Shown here in pieces: positions 3,809 through 22,425 of a stretch of DNA of 64,000 nt. Position 1 is the first letter of the stretch, and every line of letters starts with the position of its first letter. The stretch is from positions 1 to 64,000 of the IMG/VR virus record IMGVR_UViG_3300035670_000008. The stretch is one strand, 5' to 3'. The notes beneath the pieces are model-generated. The model did not search any database. It saw only the letters and a list, made by a program, of their open reading frames with translations, and had not been told where the DNA came from. A program made the translations under genes and the position numbers.

Positions 3809-4013
3809 TATTGTCGATGGTCTTGAAGAAGATGTAGACAGCGCCGCTGGGCATAGTAACGTACATTAAGTCTTCCTGCACGGCGGCAACTCGTCCTTCT
3901 GACCTGACAGTGCTGCTACCGCAGCCACGCCAGCCGTTAGAAGTGAGTTCCGCGCCGATGTAGTCTACCTCTACGGTGACTTTTTGGTGGAGTAGTTTAG
4001 CTTTGGCTTCCAT
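3744..4013 (-). CDS. hypothetical protein
   Basis: packed ORF. Confidence 0.5.
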   Translation of the reverse strand: MEAKAKLLHQKVTVEVDYIGAELTSNGWRGCGSSTVRSEGRVAAVQEDLMYVTMPSGAVYIFFKTIDNNGNEVWANNDIGDGAQVVFHG

Positions 4014-4821
4014 ATTGGTCTGGGGTAGTAGCGACAGGGGCAGTAATGGTTTCTTCGCCGTATAGCAGCACAGCTAGCGAGTAGAGCTTATCGATAACGC
4101 CGACCTCTTCAGCATAAGACAAGGCTGACTTACGTTGGTTCTTAGCCCGGGTGACTAGGTCAACGTGGTGGCGGTAGCGGTATTCCCGGTACAAGTCTCC
4201 CCACAGTTTTTGGTAGGACTCCCCGGTACGATACGCGTAGCTACGCAGCAGTTCGTTAAGGCTGGAGCGGATGGACTTTTCGGGTACCTCTTCCATAGCA
4301 GCAGGCAGCGCTAGGATTTCCTTATCCACCCGGTCGAAGCGGCCTTCAATCACCTTCAGGCGGGTGTCTTGTTCTAGCAACGCGCGGGCCTGTTCTTGTT
4401 GACGTTGCTCCACGGCGATGATGGCTTCGGCTTGTAGTCTTAACAGCTCGCCGGGGCTTAGAGGTTGTTGGGTGTAGCTTCCGGTCTTACGAATTGCGGG
4501 TAGTACTTCCGAAGTGACCCAGCGTTTAAATGCTTTGGCTTGCGGCTTGTGGCTGCCTAAAACAGCAGAGTAAAGACCGGACTCATTGATGATAGAGAGC
4601 CTGAAAGTATTGCTGCCAAAGGTTTGTCCCAAAATGGGAGAATCCATTCCGTTGGGGTTAATAGTTTGTTTGTCCTCTTCGTCAACATGCTCTAGCAGTT
4701 TTGCAGGGTTTGAATATTCTAGTACAGCGGCTACTTCTTTAGCCACGAACCAAGGTGTGTCGTCAATAGTGATGACGCTAATGGTTTGGGTGTTGAAATC
4801 GAAAGTATTCAGGTTGCTCAT
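3997..4821 (-). CDS. Bro-N domain (antirepressor-like) DNA-binding protein, Bro-1
   Basis: PWFVAKEVAAVLEY...INESGLYSAVLGSHKPQAKAFKRWVTSEVLPAIRKTGSY. Confidence 0.92.
   Translation of the reverse strand: MSNLNTFDFNTQTISVITIDDTPWFVAKEVAAVLEYSNPAKLLEHVDEEDKQTINPNGMDSPILGQTFGSNTFRLSIINESGLYSAVLGSHKPQAKAFKRWVTSEVLPAIRKTGSYTQQPLSPGELLRLQAEAIIAVEQRQQEQARALLEQDTRLKVIEGRFDRVDKEILALPAAMEEVPEKSIRSSLNELLRSYAYRTGESYQKLWGDLYREYRYRHHVDLVTRAKNQRKSALSYAEEVGVIDKLYSLAVLLYGEETITAPVATTPDQYGSQS
4620..4646. repeat. in-frame quasi-palindrome in Bro-1 (encodes DSPILGQT)
   Basis: aggtttgtccc-aaaat-gggagaatcca, 8 of 11 arm positions pair. Confidence 0.6.
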
Positions 4822-9817: not shown

Positions 9818-10268
9818 GTTCGTGTTCCTCCAGTTTCTGTAGTAGGTCTTTTACGTTACCTAAGGCTGCCCAAATCTCTTCGTCGCTGTACTTTAGGTGT
9901 ATAACAATTTGAAGGTCACCGTCATCATAGACCTTTAGTGCGGAGCTGCCAATTCGGTACTCTGGCTCGAAGTTCGTTAAAGGCGGGAGTTGATCTTCTT
10001 TCTCTTTGTAGTCTGCATCTTCATCTATGGCCAGTAGCTCCCAACTGACTCCGTATAAGTCTTCGGCCTTGAAGTACTGGACTTCTTTTAAGAACTTGCT
10101 GACTCTTAAGGCTTTTTCTAATGTTGCCCTGGGTAAGTCACACTCAATGTAATCGGGGGTAGAACCCCACTCGATGTTGCTGTAGGTGACGGCTGTAACG
10201 ACGACAGTGTTAATTTTGAATTTGTAGAATTGTTCCATAACTTTACATTTCAACAATTGAAGCGTCAC
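9804..10268 (-). CDS. hypothetical protein
   Basis: packed ORF. Confidence 0.55.
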   Translation of the reverse strand: MTLQLLKCKVMEQFYKFKINTVVVTAVTYSNIEWGSTPDYIECDLPRATLEKALRVSKFLKEVQYFKAEDLYGVSWELLAIDEDADYKEKEDQLPPLTNFEPEYRIGSSALKVYDDGDLQIVIHLKYSDEEIWAALGNVKDLLQKLEEHEHGND

Positions 10269-10977
10269 TGTAGATAATCAAGGCGATGGCATAGAGCTTG
10301 TCAATCACCCCAACCTCTTCAGCGTATTCGCAGACGGTCTTGCCTTGGTTCTTGGCGCGGGCTACCAAATCAACGTGGTGCCGGTAGCGGTACTCTTTAT
10401 ACAGATTTCGCCATAGGTTTTGATAAGACTCGCCGGTGCGGTAAGCGTAGCCACGGATAACTTCGTTTAAGCAGGAGCGAATGGATTTTTCAGGAACTTC
10501 TTCCGTAGCCGGGGGTAACTGTTTGAGTTCTTCATCGACCTTGGCAAAGCGCTGCTCGATGATGGCTAACTTCATGCTGTGTTCGGTCAACCGCTTTTCG
10601 TGGTCTACCAATACCTGTGCTGACTGAAGCACTACTTCTGCTGTTGACAGTGGTTGAATTTGGTAGCTTCCAGTTTTACGGATGGAAGGCAGCACCTCTT
10701 GTACTACCCAGTCTTGAAAAGGCCCAGCTTGGGGTTTGCGTGAAGTAAGGACAAGTCGGTAAAGCCCAGACTCTGAAATGTAGACGGTGTCAGGGTTATC
10801 GACACCCTCGGTATTACCGATGGTCTTTTCGTAATCTTTTAGGCGGCTGTAGGCGTCACTATAATTCTTGATTTCCAGTACACGACAAACGTCTGCTCCT
10901 AGAAACCAAGGCTCGCCGTCAATAGTGATAACGCGTACTTCTTGGGTGTTGAATTGGAAAGTTGTTAGATTTGTCAT
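10243..10977 (-). CDS. Bro-N domain protein Bro-2, paralogue of Bro-1
   Basis: GEPWFLGADVCRVLEI..ISESGLYRLVLTSRKPQA..FQDWV..EVLPSIRKTGSY; C-terminal domain closely matches Bro-1. Confidence 0.92.
   Translation of the reverse strand: MTNLTTFQFNTQEVRVITIDGEPWFLGADVCRVLEIKNYSDAYSRLKDYEKTIGNTEGVDNPDTVYISESGLYRLVLTSRKPQAGPFQDWVVQEVLPSIRKTGSYQIQPLSTAEVVLQSAQVLVDHEKRLTEHSMKLAIIEQRFAKVDEELKQLPPATEEVPEKSIRSCLNEVIRGYAYRTGESYQNLWRNLYKEYRYRHHVDLVARAKNQGKTVCEYAEEVGVIDKLYAIALIIYSDASIVEM
10801..10827. repeat. in-frame 27-bp quasi-palindrome in Bro-2 (encodes KTIGNTEGV)
   Basis: gacaccctcgg-tatta-ccgatggtctt. Confidence 0.8.
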
Positions 10978-11005: not shown

Positions 11006-11611
11006 TTACGCATAAATTTTTTCAATCAATTGGTTGATTACAGCGCCAATACAGAAACCTTTTTCTTGGGGCTCATACCGAATCCAAGAGCAGCCAAGAA
11101 TACTCGTAATACAATCCTGACGCTCAATGTCTTTTTTGGTTCGATAGCTATGATACGGCTCATCGCACTCAACGGCGATACGGTGCTGAGGGAAGTAAAG
11201 GTCAATTCGATAGCCTGAAACGAAAAACTGTTCAATTGGGTTTAAGTGTTGAAAAGCAGACTTAATAATTCGGAGTGTGTCGGCTTCAATAGAAGAACGA
11301 TGTATGTTTAGGTTTATACCTAGCTGCTCTGCTACCAAACGAGCCTTTGGTTTTCGTGACTTTTGTAGTAATTGTTTTACGCCCGGTTCCCAAATCACAG
11401 TTATAAGTTGGGGTCCACCAAGGGTCTCCACTAACTGGAGACCCTTCCACTCTTCATCAATACTTCGTGCTAGCCGCGATCCATCGCTCTCTGCTTCTAG
11501 TACAGTGGCTAAGTCAGTAGCTACCACACCAAAATCAAATGTGCCCTCTGGGTGTTTAACGAATCGAACTTCTTGTTGGTCAAAGTGTTGAGCGATTAAT
11601 TCAATTGTCAT
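11006..11611 (-). CDS. Bro-N-like domain fused to a DUF559/Vsr-like PD-(D/E)XK endonuclease, Bro-3
   Basis: VVATDLATVL..KGLQLVETLGGPQ..VIWEPG..SRKPKA, then YRIDLYFPQHRIAVECDE..H..D.ER..WIRY. Confidence 0.85.
   Translation of the reverse strand: MTIELIAQHFDQQEVRFVKHPEGTFDFGVVATDLATVLEAESDGSRLARSIDEEWKGLQLVETLGGPQLITVIWEPGVKQLLQKSRKPKARLVAEQLGINLNIHRSSIEADTLRIIKSAFQHLNPIEQFFVSGYRIDLYFPQHRIAVECDEPYHSYRTKKDIERQDCITSILGCSWIRYEPQEKGFCIGAVINQLIEKIYA
11420..11446. repeat. in-frame 27-bp palindrome with perfect 11-bp arms in Bro-3 (encodes KGLQLVETL)
   Basis: aagggtctcca-ctaac-tggagaccctt. Confidence 0.95.
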
Positions 11612-11650
11612 TGAATACCTCCGAAAGGTTTAATGGTTTTCTTCTCTTCA

Positions 11651-11677
11651 AAGGGTGTCCACATTATGGACGTCCTT
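11651..11677. promoter_or_regulatory. intergenic 27-bp quasi-palindrome, putative operator of the Bro-3/Bro-2 unit
   Basis: aagggtgtcca-catta-tggacgtcctt; 19/27 identical to 11420..11446. Confidence 0.65.
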
Positions 11678-11686
11678 AGCTAGTTT

Positions 11687-11706
11687 GCTTTCTTTTTGCT
11701 TTTTTC
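11687..11706 (-). promoter_or_regulatory. conserved 20-bp upstream motif GAAAAAAGC-N5-GAAAGC
   Basis: identical to 32738..32757; one mismatch to 34898..34917. Confidence 0.6.
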
Positions 11707-11720
11707 AGTCGCTTCAATAG

Positions 11721-11748
11721 AAAAAGCTGCCCACCGAAGCGGGCAGCT
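11721..11748 (-). terminator. intrinsic terminator
   Basis: AGCTGCCCGC-TTCG-GTGGGCAGCT followed by a T-run on the minus strand. Confidence 0.8.
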
Positions 11749-11801
11749 ACCATACATACACAATTACCCACCGATATGAGGCCTCGGACGCGGGCCAGCG
11801 A

Positions 11802-13493: not shown

Positions 13494-13883
13494 TTAATAA
13501 AGCTGGACAGTCTTCCAGTTGATAGCTTCCATTTCTTCAAATATATCGCGTAGCTGCCGCGCCCATTCTTCTTTAGTGATGTCCCGGCAGGCACCATCGA
13601 ACCAGTCCATAAACCAGTATTCAATCTTACCGTTAGGGAAGAAGCGGATTTGGTCGCTAGGGCCGCCGTAGCTCAGCATATAACTGTAGTAGCCGCACTC
13701 TTGCCATTCAAAGGTTCCAGGTTCGATATACTCAAAGTCCAAACCGTATTCGTGAAAGGGCGGCAGATTGTGTTCCTGGCTCCCTTCCGTTAAGACATCG
13801 ATGTCGTTTAGATACAACTCGATGTCAGCTTTTACTTTGGCTAGTTCATCGTCAATTCTCTGCTCGCAAGTTCGTTCTGACAT
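13494..13883 (-). CDS. conserved phage hypothetical protein
   Basis: EYGLDFEY..GYY.Y.LSYGGPSDQIRFF..YWFMDWFDGA. Confidence 0.7.
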   Translation of the reverse strand: MSERTCEQRIDDELAKVKADIELYLNDIDVLTEGSQEHNLPPFHEYGLDFEYIEPGTFEWQECGYYSYMLSYGGPSDQIRFFPNGKIEYWFMDWFDGACRDITKEEWARQLRDIFEEMEAINWKTVQLY

Positions 13884-14455
13884 AATTCATCTTCGATGCG
13901 GGTGCGTAGTTTTACTTTCTTCTGTAGGGCTAGCCGGACGATATCGTCTAGCTTAGATACGACCTTACCGGTGGCGTCCACACCTACGTCCACCGCTCGG
14001 TATTCATCTAGGGGACTTCTACGTCCATGAAGGTGCCCGAAAAGATGGACTGAGCCATCCATCATGCCATACCAATCTAGGATAGGGTAGTGCATCATGA
14101 CCAGCCGGGTGGGCGGCAGGCCTTCTTTCTTGTAAGTGAACGTATGGTAGTCCACGATATTAACGAAGCAGGCTTTGAACTTGCCCCTGTCTCTAAAGCT
14201 TCGGTCATGGTTGCCAGCCACTAGAAACTTACTGCCGTTGAGGGCGTTCAGGATTTCTACCGTCCTTGGTAGGTTATAGAAGGAAACGTCCCCTAGGATA
14301 TAAACGAAGTCTTCCGGCTGGACGGTAGAGTTCCACTCGGCAATCATACCTACCGTCATACCATCAACGGTGAGGTACTTGCCTCGGGTGTGGGCACAGT
14401 AGTTAAGGATGCTCCGCTGCCCAAAGTGGAGGTCGGAGGTGATGTAGGTTTGCAT
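13841..14455 (-). CDS. calcineurin-like metallophosphoesterase
   Basis: TSDLHFG, LGD, GNHD, HYP and GHLH motifs. Confidence 0.9.
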   Translation of the reverse strand: MQTYITSDLHFGQRSILNYCAHTRGKYLTVDGMTVGMIAEWNSTVQPEDFVYILGDVSFYNLPRTVEILNALNGSKFLVAGNHDRSFRDRGKFKACFVNIVDYHTFTYKKEGLPPTRLVMMHYPILDWYGMMDGSVHLFGHLHGRRSPLDEYRAVDVGVDATGKVVSKLDDIVRLALQKKVKLRTRIEDELCQNELASRELTMN

Positions 14456-14458
14456 AAC

Positions 14459-15196
14459 TTAGCGGAAGTAAGAGTGAATAACTTCGTCTAGCTGCTCATT
14501 AACAGCGTAATGCTTAACATCATACTTGCCAATTCTCTCTTTGAATGCTGGCTCCAAGTAACGAGACACGTATCGTCCTAAAGCACTTCCAGTCCCTATC
14601 CTTTCTACACTGTAACCAAGTTCCTTAGCCCGTACTTTTACAATGGTGTACTCGATCTTCTGCCCACCTAATAGCTTTTGATTTCGCATCAACTCTAGGT
14701 CGTCAGTTAAGGCATCCTCCAACAGAAGTTTAAGGTGCGGTTTAACTTGTAAGGTTGGGATTACGGCGGCGGCATTAATGTAGTCGATTATATCCCGCTG
14801 GGGCAATGCAGGTGGTTGTGCGTCTTCCGGCTTTGTCTTCAGTTTGTTTAGAATCTGCTCTAAACCAAAGGCACCAAAGGTACGCATTAAGGCTTTCGCA
14901 CCAGGGGCTTTGGCTTTTGACTCGTAGGCAAAGTATTCGAGCACTAAGATTGCAGCTACTGGAGTGAAGCCGTTTTCGGATAAGTCTGCGGCTTCAAACC
15001 CATGCTGTACAAGCCTTTCAGCTAATTTTTGTGAGCTAAAGTCTGCACCTCGAATGATAGACATATCATTCACATCAGCCATACGAGCTACGCCACGAAT
15101 GGATAAGTTTCCATTCGGCATAGCTTCATTAGAGATTAGACTGAACAACGCGGCGGGGGTATTAATTAAGCCGAAGCTAGGTAATGAATTAGTCAT
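14459..15196 (-). CDS. antirepressor/KilA-like putative DNA-binding protein
   Basis: LSIRGVARMADV...ILVLEYFAYES..A..LMR.F pattern recalled from cyanobacterial and phage antirepressor-like proteins. Confidence 0.55.
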   Translation of the reverse strand: MTNSLPSFGLINTPAALFSLISNEAMPNGNLSIRGVARMADVNDMSIIRGADFSSQKLAERLVQHGFEAADLSENGFTPVAAILVLEYFAYESKAKAPGAKALMRTFGAFGLEQILNKLKTKPEDAQPPALPQRDIIDYINAAAVIPTLQVKPHLKLLLEDALTDDLELMRNQKLLGGQKIEYTIVKVRAKELGYSVERIGTGSALGRYVSRYLEPAFKERIGKYDVKHYAVNEQLDEVIHSYFR

Positions 15197-15219
15197 ACTG
15201 ATTTAGTTGATGGGTAAAC

Positions 15220-15247
15220 AAAAAAAAGCGGTGGTTAAGACCGCTTT
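15220..15247 (-). terminator. intrinsic terminator
   Basis: GCGGT-8nt-ACCGC followed by T8 on the minus strand. Confidence 0.7.
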
Positions 15248-15264
15248 ATACTAACGTTCGATAA

Positions 15265-15398
15265 ATGGGTGTAAGCATTACTTACATCCTTATTCTTCTT
15301 CTTCTCGGGTGCTTAGAGTTAACTTAAAGGGAACGTATATTACCCGTACCCTAGTTAAAGCTTTCTTACCTATGGGGACAAGCATTGTTTGTCCCCAT
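15265..15398. repeat. array of three 27-bp quasi-palindromes of the Bro-N in-frame type
   Basis: 15265 atgggtgtaag-catta-cttacatcctt; 15327 aagggaacgta-tatta-cccgtacccta; 15372 atggggacaag-cattg-tttgtccccat. Confidence 0.75.
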
Positions 15399-15419
15399 GT
15401 CGGTCGTTTATAGCTAGGT

Positions 15420-15629
15420 TCATTGTTCTGCTGCGTCTTCTATTGTCTCAGTGTCGTAGAATTCCAAGCTGAAGTGTCCAGCATCGACGATGCTCTTCAC
15501 TAGGCTTTTGGCTTCTTTCAGCAATGCGTCTAGTTCTTCTTCAGTTTCCGCGGCGTTGTCGCTATGCACGGGGAAGTTAAGACTAAAGTAGTGCACATAC
15601 TTTGGTACGTAGTTAGGTGCGTTTTTCAT
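15420..15629 (-). CDS. hypothetical protein
   Basis: packed ORF. Confidence 0.55.
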   Translation of the reverse strand: MKNAPNYVPKYVHYFSLNFPVHSDNAAETEEELDALLKEAKSLVKSIVDAGHFSLEFYDTETIEDAAEQ

Positions 15630-15631
15630 GA

Positions 15632-15982
15632 TTAGATTTTACTTACTCGCACAGGGATGCGACCTTTCTTCAGCGGGGCTAAGCGGCGAAAGGCAGCTTT
15701 ACTTAAGTCCAGGCTGCAGTGGCAGCGGTCGGTAACTGTAACTACCACGCTTCGGTTCTTGTAGCGGACGCGGAGCCGCGTGCCCAGGCGGTAGGTTGGG
15801 TGTGCAGCTACCATAGCGGACTGGCTGAAGCGGCGTCCGTTGGCCATGCGCCGTCCATTGTAGTAGTTGCTGTAGTAGGTAGCACTAGCACGAACGGTTC
15901 GTGCGTCCACAGGGGCCTCAGGAATAAGGCAGATACCAGTTAGGGTACATAGCGCAATGGCTAGGGTTTTCTTTAAGCTCAT
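15632..15982 (-). CDS. RlpA-like double-psi beta-barrel protein with signal peptide
   Basis: ATYYS..YNGRRMANG..F...MVAAHPT..LGTRLRV..VTVTDR..LDLSKAAF; start MSLKK at 15982, downstream of a hairpin. Confidence 0.85.
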   Translation of the reverse strand: MSLKKTLAIALCTLTGICLIPEAPVDARTVRASATYYSNYYNGRRMANGRRFSQSAMVAAHPTYRLGTRLRVRYKNRSVVVTVTDRCHCSLDLSKAAFRRLAPLKKGRIPVRVSKI

Positions 15983-19581: not shown

Positions 19582-22425
19582 TTATCCGTGACAAGCGAGG
19601 CACTCCTCAGCACCACCTTCCTTTAGCTTACCAATACTTGCCTGAGTTCGGCTAGGTAAATCAGCTTGGCTAGCGGATTCACTGCGGCAGTAGTAGAGGG
19701 TCTTTAGACCTTTCTTCCAGGCTTGGTAATGGACGCGGGTGTAATAGGTTTCATCTACATCCTTGGTAAAGAATAGATTGACGGACTGGGCCTGCCCTTG
19801 CCGGTGCTTGTCCATTAGTTTCTGCCGGTCAGCCGCCTGGTTGATAATCTCCATTTGGTTGATTTCCCGGGCGGTTAAGAAGACTTCTTTCTCTTCGTCG
19901 GTTAGGAAGTCCAGGTGCTGCACACTACCCTTAGCAGCGACGATAGTATCCCAAACCTCTGGGGTGTCTTTGCCACGGTTAGCCAGTAGCTGCTTGAAGA
20001 TAGGGTTGTAGTAAAGGATAACTCCCTTAGCACCCCGCTTCTCAAAGCAGTTAGCTGCTAGTGGCTCGATGCCTGCGGAGACATGACCACAGATTAGAGA
20101 GTTAGATACCGTAGGCGCGCAGGTTAACGTATGAGTATGACGTAACCCTGTGCCTTTACACCACTCCGGCTCGCCATAGATTTTAGCTAAGTCTTTGCTG
20201 GCTAGGTTAGTCTCATCAGCGAGTTTGTTGAAGATGACTTTATTCAGCAGCCGGGCTTGGTAAGACTCGAAGGGAATCATCTTCTGCTGCAGCAGGGTAT
20301 GATAACCCAGTACCCCTAGACCTAACATCCGACTCTTCTCCGCAAAGCGGACAGCATTCTCGAAGCCAACCATTCGGCTAGCCTTATCAATATACTCTTG
20401 AATAACACCTTCCAAGAACCAGATGGCGTAGTAGATAGCCTTGGTATCTTTCCACTCTTCCCAGCGGGCTAGGTTCATGGAAGACAAACAGCAAACAAAG
20501 GTATGAAGCTCGTCAGTGTAGGCGGTTATCTCGCTGCAATTGCCTGTCATACGGCCATCAGCCAAAGCAAACTTATGAGTGCTAGGAACCTCCGTGCAGT
20601 AAGTTGGAACTGGGTCTACGTCTATGATTTCAACTTTTTGTACTTTTCCGTAGGTAGGTTTAGTGTTATAAGCACCTCGTTTCGTTGGACGCTCGAACTT
20701 CGGTAGTCTTGAGAAGCAGCATACGTCAGCTAGTTTATAGGCGCTGGAATTGGAGACAGTCAGACGGTAGCAGGCCGCTGTGCTGTACTCTCCGTAACCA
20801 TCATTAAAATCCGTTTTACCGGCTGCACGCATACAATTAAGGCTGCTATAAATGCCGAGGCTTTTTAGAAGCAGCTGTATTTGTTCTAGAAAACCTTTGT
20901 GGATGCTTGCTAGTTGGTAACAGCGGGCATCCCGACTGTTTACAACTGTTCCATCCCCGTCAAACAATCCTGCTAGGAATTCTACCTTACTAGTAAACGT
21001 CCAATCTAAGTATTCTTCTGGTAGCTGCTTTTTGTATTCCTTGCACCAAGGATAGAGAGATGCTTTTCGCGCTGTTAGCCCTAGAACGTTAACTCGGTTT
21101 TCACCAGCCATCTTAACATTAGCTTCTGTTATGCACGCGTCGTTGCAGTTTTCGTCGATCGATAAGGAGTTTACACCAGAAAGAATCCGCTCCTGGCACA
21201 TATACTTTGTGTCGTATAGCCACAGAATCGGTTTTCCATTGTAGCTAGTTCCATCGGCGGCTAAGAAACCTTTAAGGTAGGCGGCTTCGAGCTCCACGTT
21301 TCCGTTGTATTGGACTGCGTGTGTTTCCACAGTCATACTGTGCTTGAGGTCCTTAGCTTCCACAAAACCAAAGGCTTCGGTAGGAAAGCGGTGGTTTAAA
21401 GTAACACGGGTTTTACTTCCGTCTCGGAATGTAACTTCTACGAGTTGGTTAGTATGCCCCTTATACTCAAAGGAATTGTTTTGTACCCACTGCTCCCCAT
21501 CCCAGATGGTCACAGTTTTTCCTACGAGGTCTTTTATCTGTTTGGGGCCTTCTGATGTAGCCACCAGCTCTTCACCTAACAGACAGATATTACTAGCTGT
21601 TACCTTTAGATTATTGTTTAAGTAACCAAGCGGAAGGATATCGGGGTTGTTGACGTTGTCTGTGAAGAATAGATAAGGCTCGCCTGTCTCCTTCCGAGTC
21701 TTTAGAATTTCGGTATAAAGTTCGACTGCTTCTGGGTCGCCGCTCTCGATAGCGTGCATATCAGCGTCACTAATACACACCGCATGGTGGAGATTCATGC
21801 AGCGTTGGTTCTCATCCCCTTGGGGACGGCGCATCCGCAGGAACTCCCGAATGTCCTTGTGGTTAAAAGGCAGATACATTGCTGTAGCCCCGCGGCGAGT
21901 CTGCCCTTGGGAAGTAGCTATGGTTGCTGAATCAAAGACCTTACACCAAGGGATGACTCCTTCTGAATAGCCCCCACTGTGAATAGGCTCACCTCGGCCT
22001 CGTACATTCCCGATATATACACCTACACCTGCCCCTTTACTAGATAGATGAGACAGCTCTTTAACCGAGCTAAAGATTCCATGCAAAGAGTCAGATACGC
22101 TAATGGTATTGCATGAGATGGGCAACCCACGGTCGGTACCCATATTACTCAACACAGGTGTAGCTGGGCCTAGCCAGCCGTGCCACATCATTGAAAAGAA
22201 GATGGGGGCTAGCTCGGGTTTACTAAGCCTGGCTGCCACGGCGTTAGCCACACGCTTATACATATCCCAAGGGGTTTCCCCTTCTAGTAGATACCCATGT
22301 TTAAGGGTGTGTAGACCCTCTGGAGTCATCCAGTAAGGCTGCTCGTTGACGGGCTTGTGACGAATGAGTGGAATACCGTGAACTTCTTGAGTGGCGGCGG
22401 CAGGGGGGATAGGAAAGATGAACAT
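19582..22425 (-). CDS. nrdA: class Ia ribonucleotide reductase alpha subunit containing an intein
   Basis: PATPVLSN, ISC, SQG..RRGA, TGEPY, SNI|C...N|CSEI, APTVSNS, GLKTLYY, C-terminal CLAC. Confidence 0.95.
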   Translation of the reverse strand: MFIFPIPPAAATQEVHGIPLIRHKPVNEQPYWMTPEGLHTLKHGYLLEGETPWDMYKRVANAVAARLSKPELAPIFFSMMWHGWLGPATPVLSNMGTDRGLPISCNTISVSDSLHGIFSSVKELSHLSSKGAGVGVYIGNVRGRGEPIHSGGYSEGVIPWCKVFDSATIATSQGQTRRGATAMYLPFNHKDIREFLRMRRPQGDENQRCMNLHHAVCISDADMHAIESGDPEAVELYTEILKTRKETGEPYLFFTDNVNNPDILPLGYLNNNLKVTASNICLLGEELVATSEGPKQIKDLVGKTVTIWDGEQWVQNNSFEYKGHTNQLVEVTFRDGSKTRVTLNHRFPTEAFGFVEAKDLKHSMTVETHAVQYNGNVELEAAYLKGFLAADGTSYNGKPILWLYDTKYMCQERILSGVNSLSIDENCNDACITEANVKMAGENRVNVLGLTARKASLYPWCKEYKKQLPEEYLDWTFTSKVEFLAGLFDGDGTVVNSRDARCYQLASIHKGFLEQIQLLLKSLGIYSSLNCMRAAGKTDFNDGYGEYSTAACYRLTVSNSSAYKLADVCCFSRLPKFERPTKRGAYNTKPTYGKVQKVEIIDVDPVPTYCTEVPSTHKFALADGRMTGNCSEITAYTDELHTFVCCLSSMNLARWEEWKDTKAIYYAIWFLEGVIQEYIDKASRMVGFENAVRFAEKSRMLGLGVLGYHTLLQQKMIPFESYQARLLNKVIFNKLADETNLASKDLAKIYGEPEWCKGTGLRHTHTLTCAPTVSNSLICGHVSAGIEPLAANCFEKRGAKGVILYYNPIFKQLLANRGKDTPEVWDTIVAAKGSVQHLDFLTDEEKEVFLTAREINQMEIINQAADRQKLMDKHRQGQAQSVNLFFTKDVDETYYTRVHYQAWKKGLKTLYYCRSESASQADLPSRTQASIGKLKEGGAEECLACHG
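20539..21585 (-). mobile_element. 349-aa intein with LAGLIDADG homing endonuclease
   Basis: starts CLLGEELV; block B VTLNHRF; YLKGFLAADG and FLAGLFDGDG; ends MTGN before C-extein Cys. Confidence 0.93.

Follow-up and report, generated by a model that had tools for sequence, protein, structure and literature searches.

Free-standing, non-coding copies of a Bro-gene palindrome upstream of an antirepressor-like phage gene

Why does a phage keep three short palindromes, each with different arms, in one of its few intergenic gaps? The elements lie in the first 64 kb (positions 1 to 64,000, hereafter the window) of the 216,563-bp virus record IMGVR_UViG_3300035670_000008, which is present in subsurface-metagenome runs. 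Every gene around them is on the minus strand, including a phosphoesterase (13841-14455), P0001 (14459-15196, 245 aa), P0002 (15420-15629, 69 aa, no family), a DPBB lipoprotein (15632-15982), and two Bro-N genes (10243-10977 and 11006-11611), the latter fused to a DUF559/Vsr-like nuclease. An earlier sequence-only reading described three Bro-type palindromes upstream of an antirepressor-like gene and offered a multi-operator or decoy region, a cassette reservoir, or a short structured transcript as explanations, without excluding coding. We found that this observation is correct, whereas its interpretation is supported only in part.

The three 27-nt elements are located at 15265-15291 (B1), 15327-15353 (B2), and 15372-15398 (B3), with starts 62 and 45 nt apart, and all read A[T/A]GGG-N6-[C/T]ATT[A/G]-N6-CC[C/T] on the plus strand. 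They share GGG...CCC ends and a YATTR centre but differ in their arms. On the coding (minus) strand, B1 reads AAGGATGTAAG-TAATG-CTTACACCCAT, a 9-bp stem with a 5-nt loop in which eight pairs are Watson-Crick and one is A.C (G.T on the plus strand). B3 has 13-nt arms around one central base that are 92% complementary and is the most stable of the set (-15.5 and -19.7 kcal/mol on the minus and plus strands). Both B1 and B3 fold far better than shuffled sequences on either strand (z -3.7 to -6.3). B2 is degenerate (GGGTACG...CGTTCCC), with 3+3 pairs around a mismatch, a 9-nt centre, and z of about -1, and it counts as a member only through its shared ends, centre, polarity, and 5' arm. A loose pattern with up to one mismatch gave 16 hits in the window against 6.15 +/- 2.7 in shuffles (0 of 100 shuffles reached 16), and three of the hits lie within 134 nt. 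A hairpin scan of the whole 216.5-kb genome found only one further member, copy A (11651-11677, stem 11653-11675). A hairpin with a CATTA loop at 199.7 kb proved to be an ordinary terminator in the opposite polarity.

The terminator noted between the array and P0001 is real but lies on the minus strand (15217-15247), with an 8-bp stem (15247-15225), a 7-nt loop, and a run of eight T. On the coding strand, the order is therefore the P0002 stop, B3, B2, B1, the terminator, 28 nt, and the ATG of P0001. Because the terminator acts on the strand of the upstream gene, the array is a 3'UTR or a leader and not a simple promoter region. None of B1-B3 is itself followed by a T run on the coding strand, and only B1 was flagged as terminator-like, on the opposite strand. 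A promoter scan found none on the minus strand between 10000 and 19000, with only partial -10-like TAAT strings in the loops. The whole 222-nt spacer folds better than shuffles on both strands (z -2.5 and -3.8), although a possible anti-terminator pairing between 15356-15368 and the 5' arm of the terminator (11 of 13 pairs) does not appear in the minimum-energy fold. The 31-codon minus-strand open reading frame (15290-15385) exists and starts at the ATG in the B3 loop. No match at gathering score was found in the window with Rfam 15, and permissive scans of both palindrome loci gave only sub-threshold chance hits.

To determine whether the elements belong to the conserved backbone, we compared the locus with related phages (comparison contigs and loci are given L numbers here). 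Searches with blastn and tblastn against GenBank phages returned nothing for the locus or P0001, and only hits of 27% identity or less for the helicase; IMG/VR scans with the phosphoesterase, the DPBB protein, and the helicase also returned nothing. Relatives were instead obtained by aligning contigs of other sequencing runs to the locus and through protein clusters. Two relatives, at about 90% and about 83% identity, skip 14272-15433 and 14245-15630 (joints 14271>15434 and 14244>15631). In the sister phages L007/L008, the stop of the P0002 homologue overlaps the phosphoesterase start, so that the window carries a 964-nt accessory cassette (14456-15419) consisting of the array, the terminator, and P0001. 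The sister phage L009 has other genes at this site, and the ENA contig L010 has an identical cassette. The sequence-only reading had proposed that a conserved small gene in relatives, with the palindromes not conserved, would refute it; the region is simply absent from L007, L008, L009, and the second relative recovered from the sequencing runs, and the only other copy is identical. In addition, copy A lies in a clean 47-nt insertion (11634-11680), 42 nt upstream of the ATG of the Bro-N/DUF559 gene 11006-11611, where L009 and L007 both read ...GCAAACTA|TTAAACCTTT... without interruption. In L009 (8660-8732), a short upstream open reading frame ends in ATGA on the Bro start codon (MSEKEKAKRKQTIKPFGELQ); in the window (11612-11720), the 47-nt insertion interrupts it, and the ATG in the loop of copy A reopens the same frame (18 codons). 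The sister phages also carry a cytosine DNA methylase (PF00145; L007/L008 4689-5798, L009 3008-4117) between the DPBB gene and the P0002 homologue, which the window lacks (1108 extra letters in the alignment), in the same hyperplastic stretch.

The downstream gene is antirepressor-like, as had been suggested. P0001 had no Pfam or PHROG hit of its own, but its C-terminal 150 residues (93-244 in the alignment) are 47% identical (E 4e-42) to the C-terminal half of a Bro-N protein in locus L061, with the junction at the SRKP motif. The N-terminal 92 aa are unrelated; P0001 is thus a Bro-family protein that lacks the stretch of Bro-N normally carrying the palindrome described below. Its neighbours in a protein atlas (KilA-N, ORF6N, Rha, and BstA_C clusters) agree, as leads only. 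Homologues of P0001 (40-44% identity) sit in contigs L002-L005, which are rich in GCGATCGC (the cyanobacterial HIP1 motif), and L004/L005 have a TCTTACTA-A-TAGTAAGA palindrome about 150 nt upstream, which hints that the gene pool of the phage, and perhaps its host, is cyanobacterial.

The name Bro-type palindrome also fits. We built a covariance model (R1) from B1-B3, copy A, and two similar hairpins noticed inside Bro-N coding sequences. The model found the element at the same protein position in Bro-N genes of the window, in L009, in a divergent Bro-N gene of L003, and in 7 of 9 IMG/VR Bro-N loci; a wider IMG/VR scan with a Bro-N alignment returned the same 9 loci. Among Bro-N genes not used to build it, sites in L003/L066, L062-L068, L131, L138, L150, L151, L084, and L082 were recovered at E from 1e-3 to 4e-6, whereas the scores of A and B1-B3 follow by construction from their place in the seed. 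Minus-strand scores exceeded plus-strand scores (36.7 against 20.6 bits for B1), and both A, before the Bro-N/DUF559 gene, and B1-B3, before P0001, share the polarity of the adjacent Bro-family gene. In the window, gene 11006-11611 carries an in-frame palindrome at 11420-11446 with 11 perfect pairs, covering codons K56-L64 (KGLQLVETL), which is the most stable hairpin window of the whole open reading frame (rank 1/199). A weaker one (9 pairs with one mismatch, 1-nt centre; rank 3/242) lies at the same Bro-N position in gene 10243-10977 (10801-10827), while the third Bro-N gene, 3997-4821, has no palindrome. The fixed position is K-G-x5-T-[L/P], just before the GGxQ motif. The family is defined by shape and not by sequence: about 23-27 bp, usually (A)AGGG...CCCT(T) at the base, a centre that continues the symmetry (YANTR), and inner arms that differ from copy to copy but stay complementary. 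B1, B3, and A fit this description fully, and B2 only partly.

To test generality without selecting for pairing, Bro-N genes were taken from 200 cyanobacterial genomes and from about 120 genomes in each of two other phyla, aligned by an iterated protein profile, and scored at the aligned site. Among 82 distinct Bro-N sites from phages and three bacterial phyla, chosen only by protein alignment, 43 (52%) have a palindrome of at least 8 Watson-Crick pairs with at most one mismatch and 26 have at least 10, against 1.3% and 0.28% of all in-frame 27-nt windows of the same open reading frames. The site ranks first in its open reading frame in 15 genes by palindrome score and in 18 by folding energy, and is in the top 2% in 30 (binomial P about 1e-24) and 37 of 82 genes, respectively. 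The arms and the encoded residues change together (KGL..ETL, KGV..DTL, RGT..GTP, and NTLI.NEGI), for example GTC/GAC giving V..D and CTC/GAG giving L..E, and one gene has a fully different perfect palindrome coding NTLIINEGI. In 31 of the 43 genes, at most 1% of synonymous recodings keep the palindrome. On an unselected alignment of fifty 27-nt sites, 61% of cells pair against 49% in shuffles and the covariation score is 0.31 against 0.16, exceeding all 500 shuffles and all slid registers. In an AlphaFold model, the segment (K56-T63 of gene 11006-11611) is predicted to form a single beta strand, so that protein symmetry does not explain the palindrome. Moreover, a second Bro-N subfamily with a longer insert at the same site (KKEGSQL..CNQLKMKA; L086, L089, L101, L103, L124, L125, and L153) carries an 11-14-bp perfect palindrome there, of unrelated sequence (e.g., CAGTTGGTTACA / TGTAACCAACTG), in three phyla. 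We found no paper describing this feature in the library searched.

Free-standing copies beside bro-type genes recur in three unrelated genomes. L151, a proteobacterial genome, has a perfect copy 22 nt before the Bro start codon and abutting the ribosome-binding site, which shares 8 of 10 arm positions with the coding palindrome of that gene. L067 has one just upstream of its Bro gene, and L003 has one between the Bro stop and a P0001 homologue, with a 5' arm identical to that of B2. The copies A, L067, and L151 share the 3' flank CCCTTTG. Nevertheless, free-standing copies are rare, occurring in about 4 genomes among roughly 95 bro loci searched. An exact-pattern scan of IMG/VR for the A/B1 subtype returned none, and a scan of 185,579 species genomes for a host repeat of this subtype gave 41 scattered single hits, of which 3 were complementary against about 2.2 expected, which is at chance level.

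Taken together, these results indicate that B1-B3 and copy A are free-standing, non-coding members of a palindrome family whose usual home is inside Bro-N coding sequences. We favor, at a probability of about 0.45, the reading that the palindrome is a cis-acting site recognized through its structure, as a hairpin in RNA or single-stranded DNA or as a cruciform or symmetric duplex, by a Bro-family nucleic-acid-binding protein or its partner. Only the symmetry, the ends, and the centre are kept, so whatever reads the site should recognize structure. In this view, P0001 lost the N-terminal part holding the site and has three copies in front of it instead; with a terminator 28 nt before its start codon and no recognizable promoter in between, it might be expressed mainly by read-through from the upstream operon, and the array plus terminator would act as its regulatory leader (an attenuator or insulator with protein-binding hairpins). 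The analysis itself establishes the family membership, the insertion of copy A and of the recently gained cassette, the nucleotide-level selection on the coding palindrome, and the Bro relationship of P0001, whereas protein binding, the nature of the target as RNA or DNA, and the control by read-through are inferred from sequence alone. Several findings weigh against this reading. The five palindromes in this genome all have different arms and none of the three resident Bro-N genes has arms matching A or B1-B3, so a sequence-specific cognate partner inside this phage is not evident, and we dropped the idea of a cognate operator within this phage. In addition, free-standing copies are rare, sister phages do without the array, copy A, and P0001, B2 is decayed, about half of the Bro-N genes have no palindrome, and a site before a terminator is an odd position for a DNA operator. 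A classical set of operators for one sequence-specific dimeric repressor is unlikely, because the arms of A, B1, B2, B3, and the two coding palindromes all differ, and a cassette reservoir has only indirect support from the position of the array at the edge of an indel cassette.

Bro-N is one of the commonest domains in phage and prophage antirepressor genes, and its function is poorly understood. If confirmed at scale, the coding palindrome would give the family a concrete, testable nucleic-acid partner that is position-fixed, tuned by codon choice, and free in sequence, occurring in about half of the genes sampled across three phyla. It would also be a rare case of strong selection on DNA or RNA structure overriding amino-acid identity inside a folded domain, and could help explain why bro genes are so mosaic. 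For annotation, it identifies small intergenic palindromes near bro-type genes as family members and not as terminators or operators of unknown origin.

The main rival, which we consider unlikely but serious, is that the free-standing copies are recombination scars or hot spots without a regulatory role. The coding palindrome would be a break or template-switch hot spot, short palindrome-centred patches would be copied into nearby junctions during cassette exchange, and the palindromes would persist by homogenizing their own arms through intrastrand template switching, so that the array marks successive exchange events at a hyperplastic site. The array and copy A are both insertions, the site between P0002 and the phosphoesterase holds different cargo in L007/L008, L009, and the window, the mismatches in A and B1 are transitions in one arm, B2 is decaying, and copy A, including 3' flank similarity, resembles a Bro-N coding fragment (KDVHNVDTL against KGVHTVDTL in L131). 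The bro genes are also visibly mosaic. A bro gene like that of L009 (250 aa) is split in the window at the SRKP motif, about 25 codons 3' of the palindrome, the same motif at which P0001 joins: gene 11006-11611 keeps its first 91 residues (84% identity) and continues into the nuclease, whereas gene 10243-10977 has a different Bro-N domain joined to the L009-type C-terminal 145 residues (about 95% identity). It looks like an in-frame nuclease-plus-new-N-domain cassette inserted at the SRKP motif, possibly a homing-type element that borrows the Bro-N domain. However, only the palindrome itself is shared; the flanks of B1-B3 show no Bro-N coding similarity on inspection; three different palindromes in tandem, in one polarity and at 45-62-nt spacing, are hard to obtain from scars; P0001 has a copy family on one side of the cassette only; and maintenance of the coding palindrome at one site through complete sequence turnover across three phyla argues for function and not neutral homogenization.

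This rival has a parallel in the PeSL cassettes of T4-type phages (Arbiol et al. 2010, PMC2839356; Comeau et al. 2014, PMC4122927), short intergenic motifs with GGGG...CCCC stem-loops that are concentrated in hyperplastic regions, sit at the borders of gene insertions and deletions between sister phages, and have been proposed as targets of a recombination protein. The elements here share the G-run/C-run stem-loop at indel borders. However, PeSLs are about 100-bp conserved sequences that include a strong sigma-70 promoter and flank cassettes on both sides, whereas here no promoter was found, only the roughly 25-bp palindrome is shared, no copy lies in the 3 nt between P0001 and the phosphoesterase, and the family also lives inside a protein-coding sequence. 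REP/BIME palindromes and integron attC sites are likewise imperfect palindromes defined more by structure than by sequence, which cluster in intergenic arrays after genes and can stabilize mRNA or serve as single-strand recombination sites. REPs occur in tens to hundreds of copies with a RAYT transposase, whereas this genome has four free-standing copies and no Y1 transposase (no PF01797 match); attC sites are 57-141 bp with R/L boxes and need an integron integrase. The lack of a Y1 transposase also led us to drop an IS200/IS605-type single-strand hairpin, as the end hairpins of the one TnpB/Cas12f-like gene (72895-74103, outside the window) are not family members. A CRISPR mini-array is not indicated, because the repeats differ in their arms and a direct-repeat search gave only 80% over 15 nt.

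A more speculative possibility, which we regard as improbable but not excluded, is that Bro-N genes carry a self-site, a variable, codon-embedded palindrome recognized by the encoded or a partner nucleic-acid-binding protein in a cognate, structure-dependent way, so that protein and site would be inherited as one unit. A phage could then collect free-standing palindromes of foreign specificity, such as the array here, either to titrate or hijack Bro/KilA-N-type regulators and defence proteins of competing prophages or to place an accessory gene under their control. Operators inside coding sequences, such as the lambda ori iterons within gene O, lac O2, and gal OI, are also symmetric protein-binding sites embedded in frame in a gene, and in lambda the gene is that of the binding protein. 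Those sites have a conserved sequence within a system, whereas here the sequence is free and only the symmetry is kept, which points to recognition of structure. Arrays of roughly 30-bp imperfect palindromes (hr regions) often lie next to bro genes in baculoviruses and are associated with rearrangements, although hr palindromes are near-identical within a genome, are bound by IE-1, and are enhancers and origins in eukaryotic viruses; no homology is implied.

It is less likely that the elements are plain RNA-level features of the upstream transcript, i.e., 3'UTR hairpins protecting the P0002 mRNA from 3' exonucleases or processing sites, with the resemblance to Bro-N palindromes reflecting ancestry only. 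The array does lie between the P0002 stop and a good terminator on the same strand, B1 and B3 are predicted to be stable hairpins as minus-strand RNA (-8.8 and -15.5 kcal/mol), and the spacer folds well, as described above. However, the P0002 homologue of sister phages has no 3'UTR at all, copy A sits after a terminator in a 5' leader, and this reading explains neither the conserved ends and centre nor the link with bro genes. Leader hairpins of the nut/boxB type are similarly small, with a conserved loop, and are transcribed just upstream of an intrinsic terminator that must be read through to express the next gene; here, no N-like or Q-like factor was identified, the stems are 9-13 bp against 5 bp for boxB, and copy A lies after its terminator.

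A decoy or anti-defence array, titrating foreign Bro-N/KilA-N-type DNA-binding proteins such as prophage abortive-infection proteins of the BstA kind, is a remote possibility that rests on analogy. The arms match no resident Bro-N gene, so any cognate partner would be foreign, and the atlas neighbours of P0001 include BstA_C, KilA-N, and ORF6N clusters, as leads only. BstA, with a KilA-N N-terminal domain, is suppressed by aba, a short, variant-specific DNA element that overlaps its own gene, acts in cis or trans, and needs multiple copies in trans (Owen et al. 2021, PMC8585504). However, aba has a demonstrated function, is 63 bp, spans the gene start, has terminal direct CCCGCC repeats, and is not a palindrome, whereas the elements here are palindromes without such repeats, the coding one lies about 55 codons into the Bro-N domain, and the array has only three copies, one of them decayed.

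Plus-strand features, as antisense terminators or a small RNA, are very unlikely: all non-Watson-Crick pairs are G.T on the plus strand, the hairpins are 1.5-4 kcal/mol more stable there, and B1 is flagged as terminator-like on that strand, but the G.T pairs are explained by transitions in one arm of an ancestral perfect GGGTGT/ACACCC palindrome, intact in L003, L068, and L131, there is no plus-strand gene or promoter nearby, and the polarity relative to bro-type genes is that of the coding copies. Least likely is a small protein gene, since, although A, B1, and B3 each have an AAGGA/GGGGA stretch 6-8 nt before an ATG in the loop on the coding strand, the ATG and the M-[L/W]-[T/V]-P start follow automatically from the palindrome sequence, B2 has no ATG, the putative ribosome-binding site would be locked in the stem, and the absence of the region from relatives, with the only other copy identical, leaves no coding signature.

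We also found a recurring intergenic module (window 11725-11800; genome 213100-213200; L007 8021-8120 and 9336-9473; L009 8586-8730), with a small hairpin with covarying ends (GGCC/CCCC...CGCGYCCGA...GGCC/GGGG), a TATATCGG-like box resembling a -10 element, a strong terminator about 30 nt later, and an A-rich leader, which could be a short RNA or a promoter-terminator unit. Outside the window, an apparent tRNA gene (about 68470-68545) lies in the spacer 68394-68583, whereas a tRNA search found none inside the window. Finally, Pfam hits indicate that the ribonucleotide reductase large subunit (19582-22425) carries an intein with a LAGLIDADG homing endonuclease.
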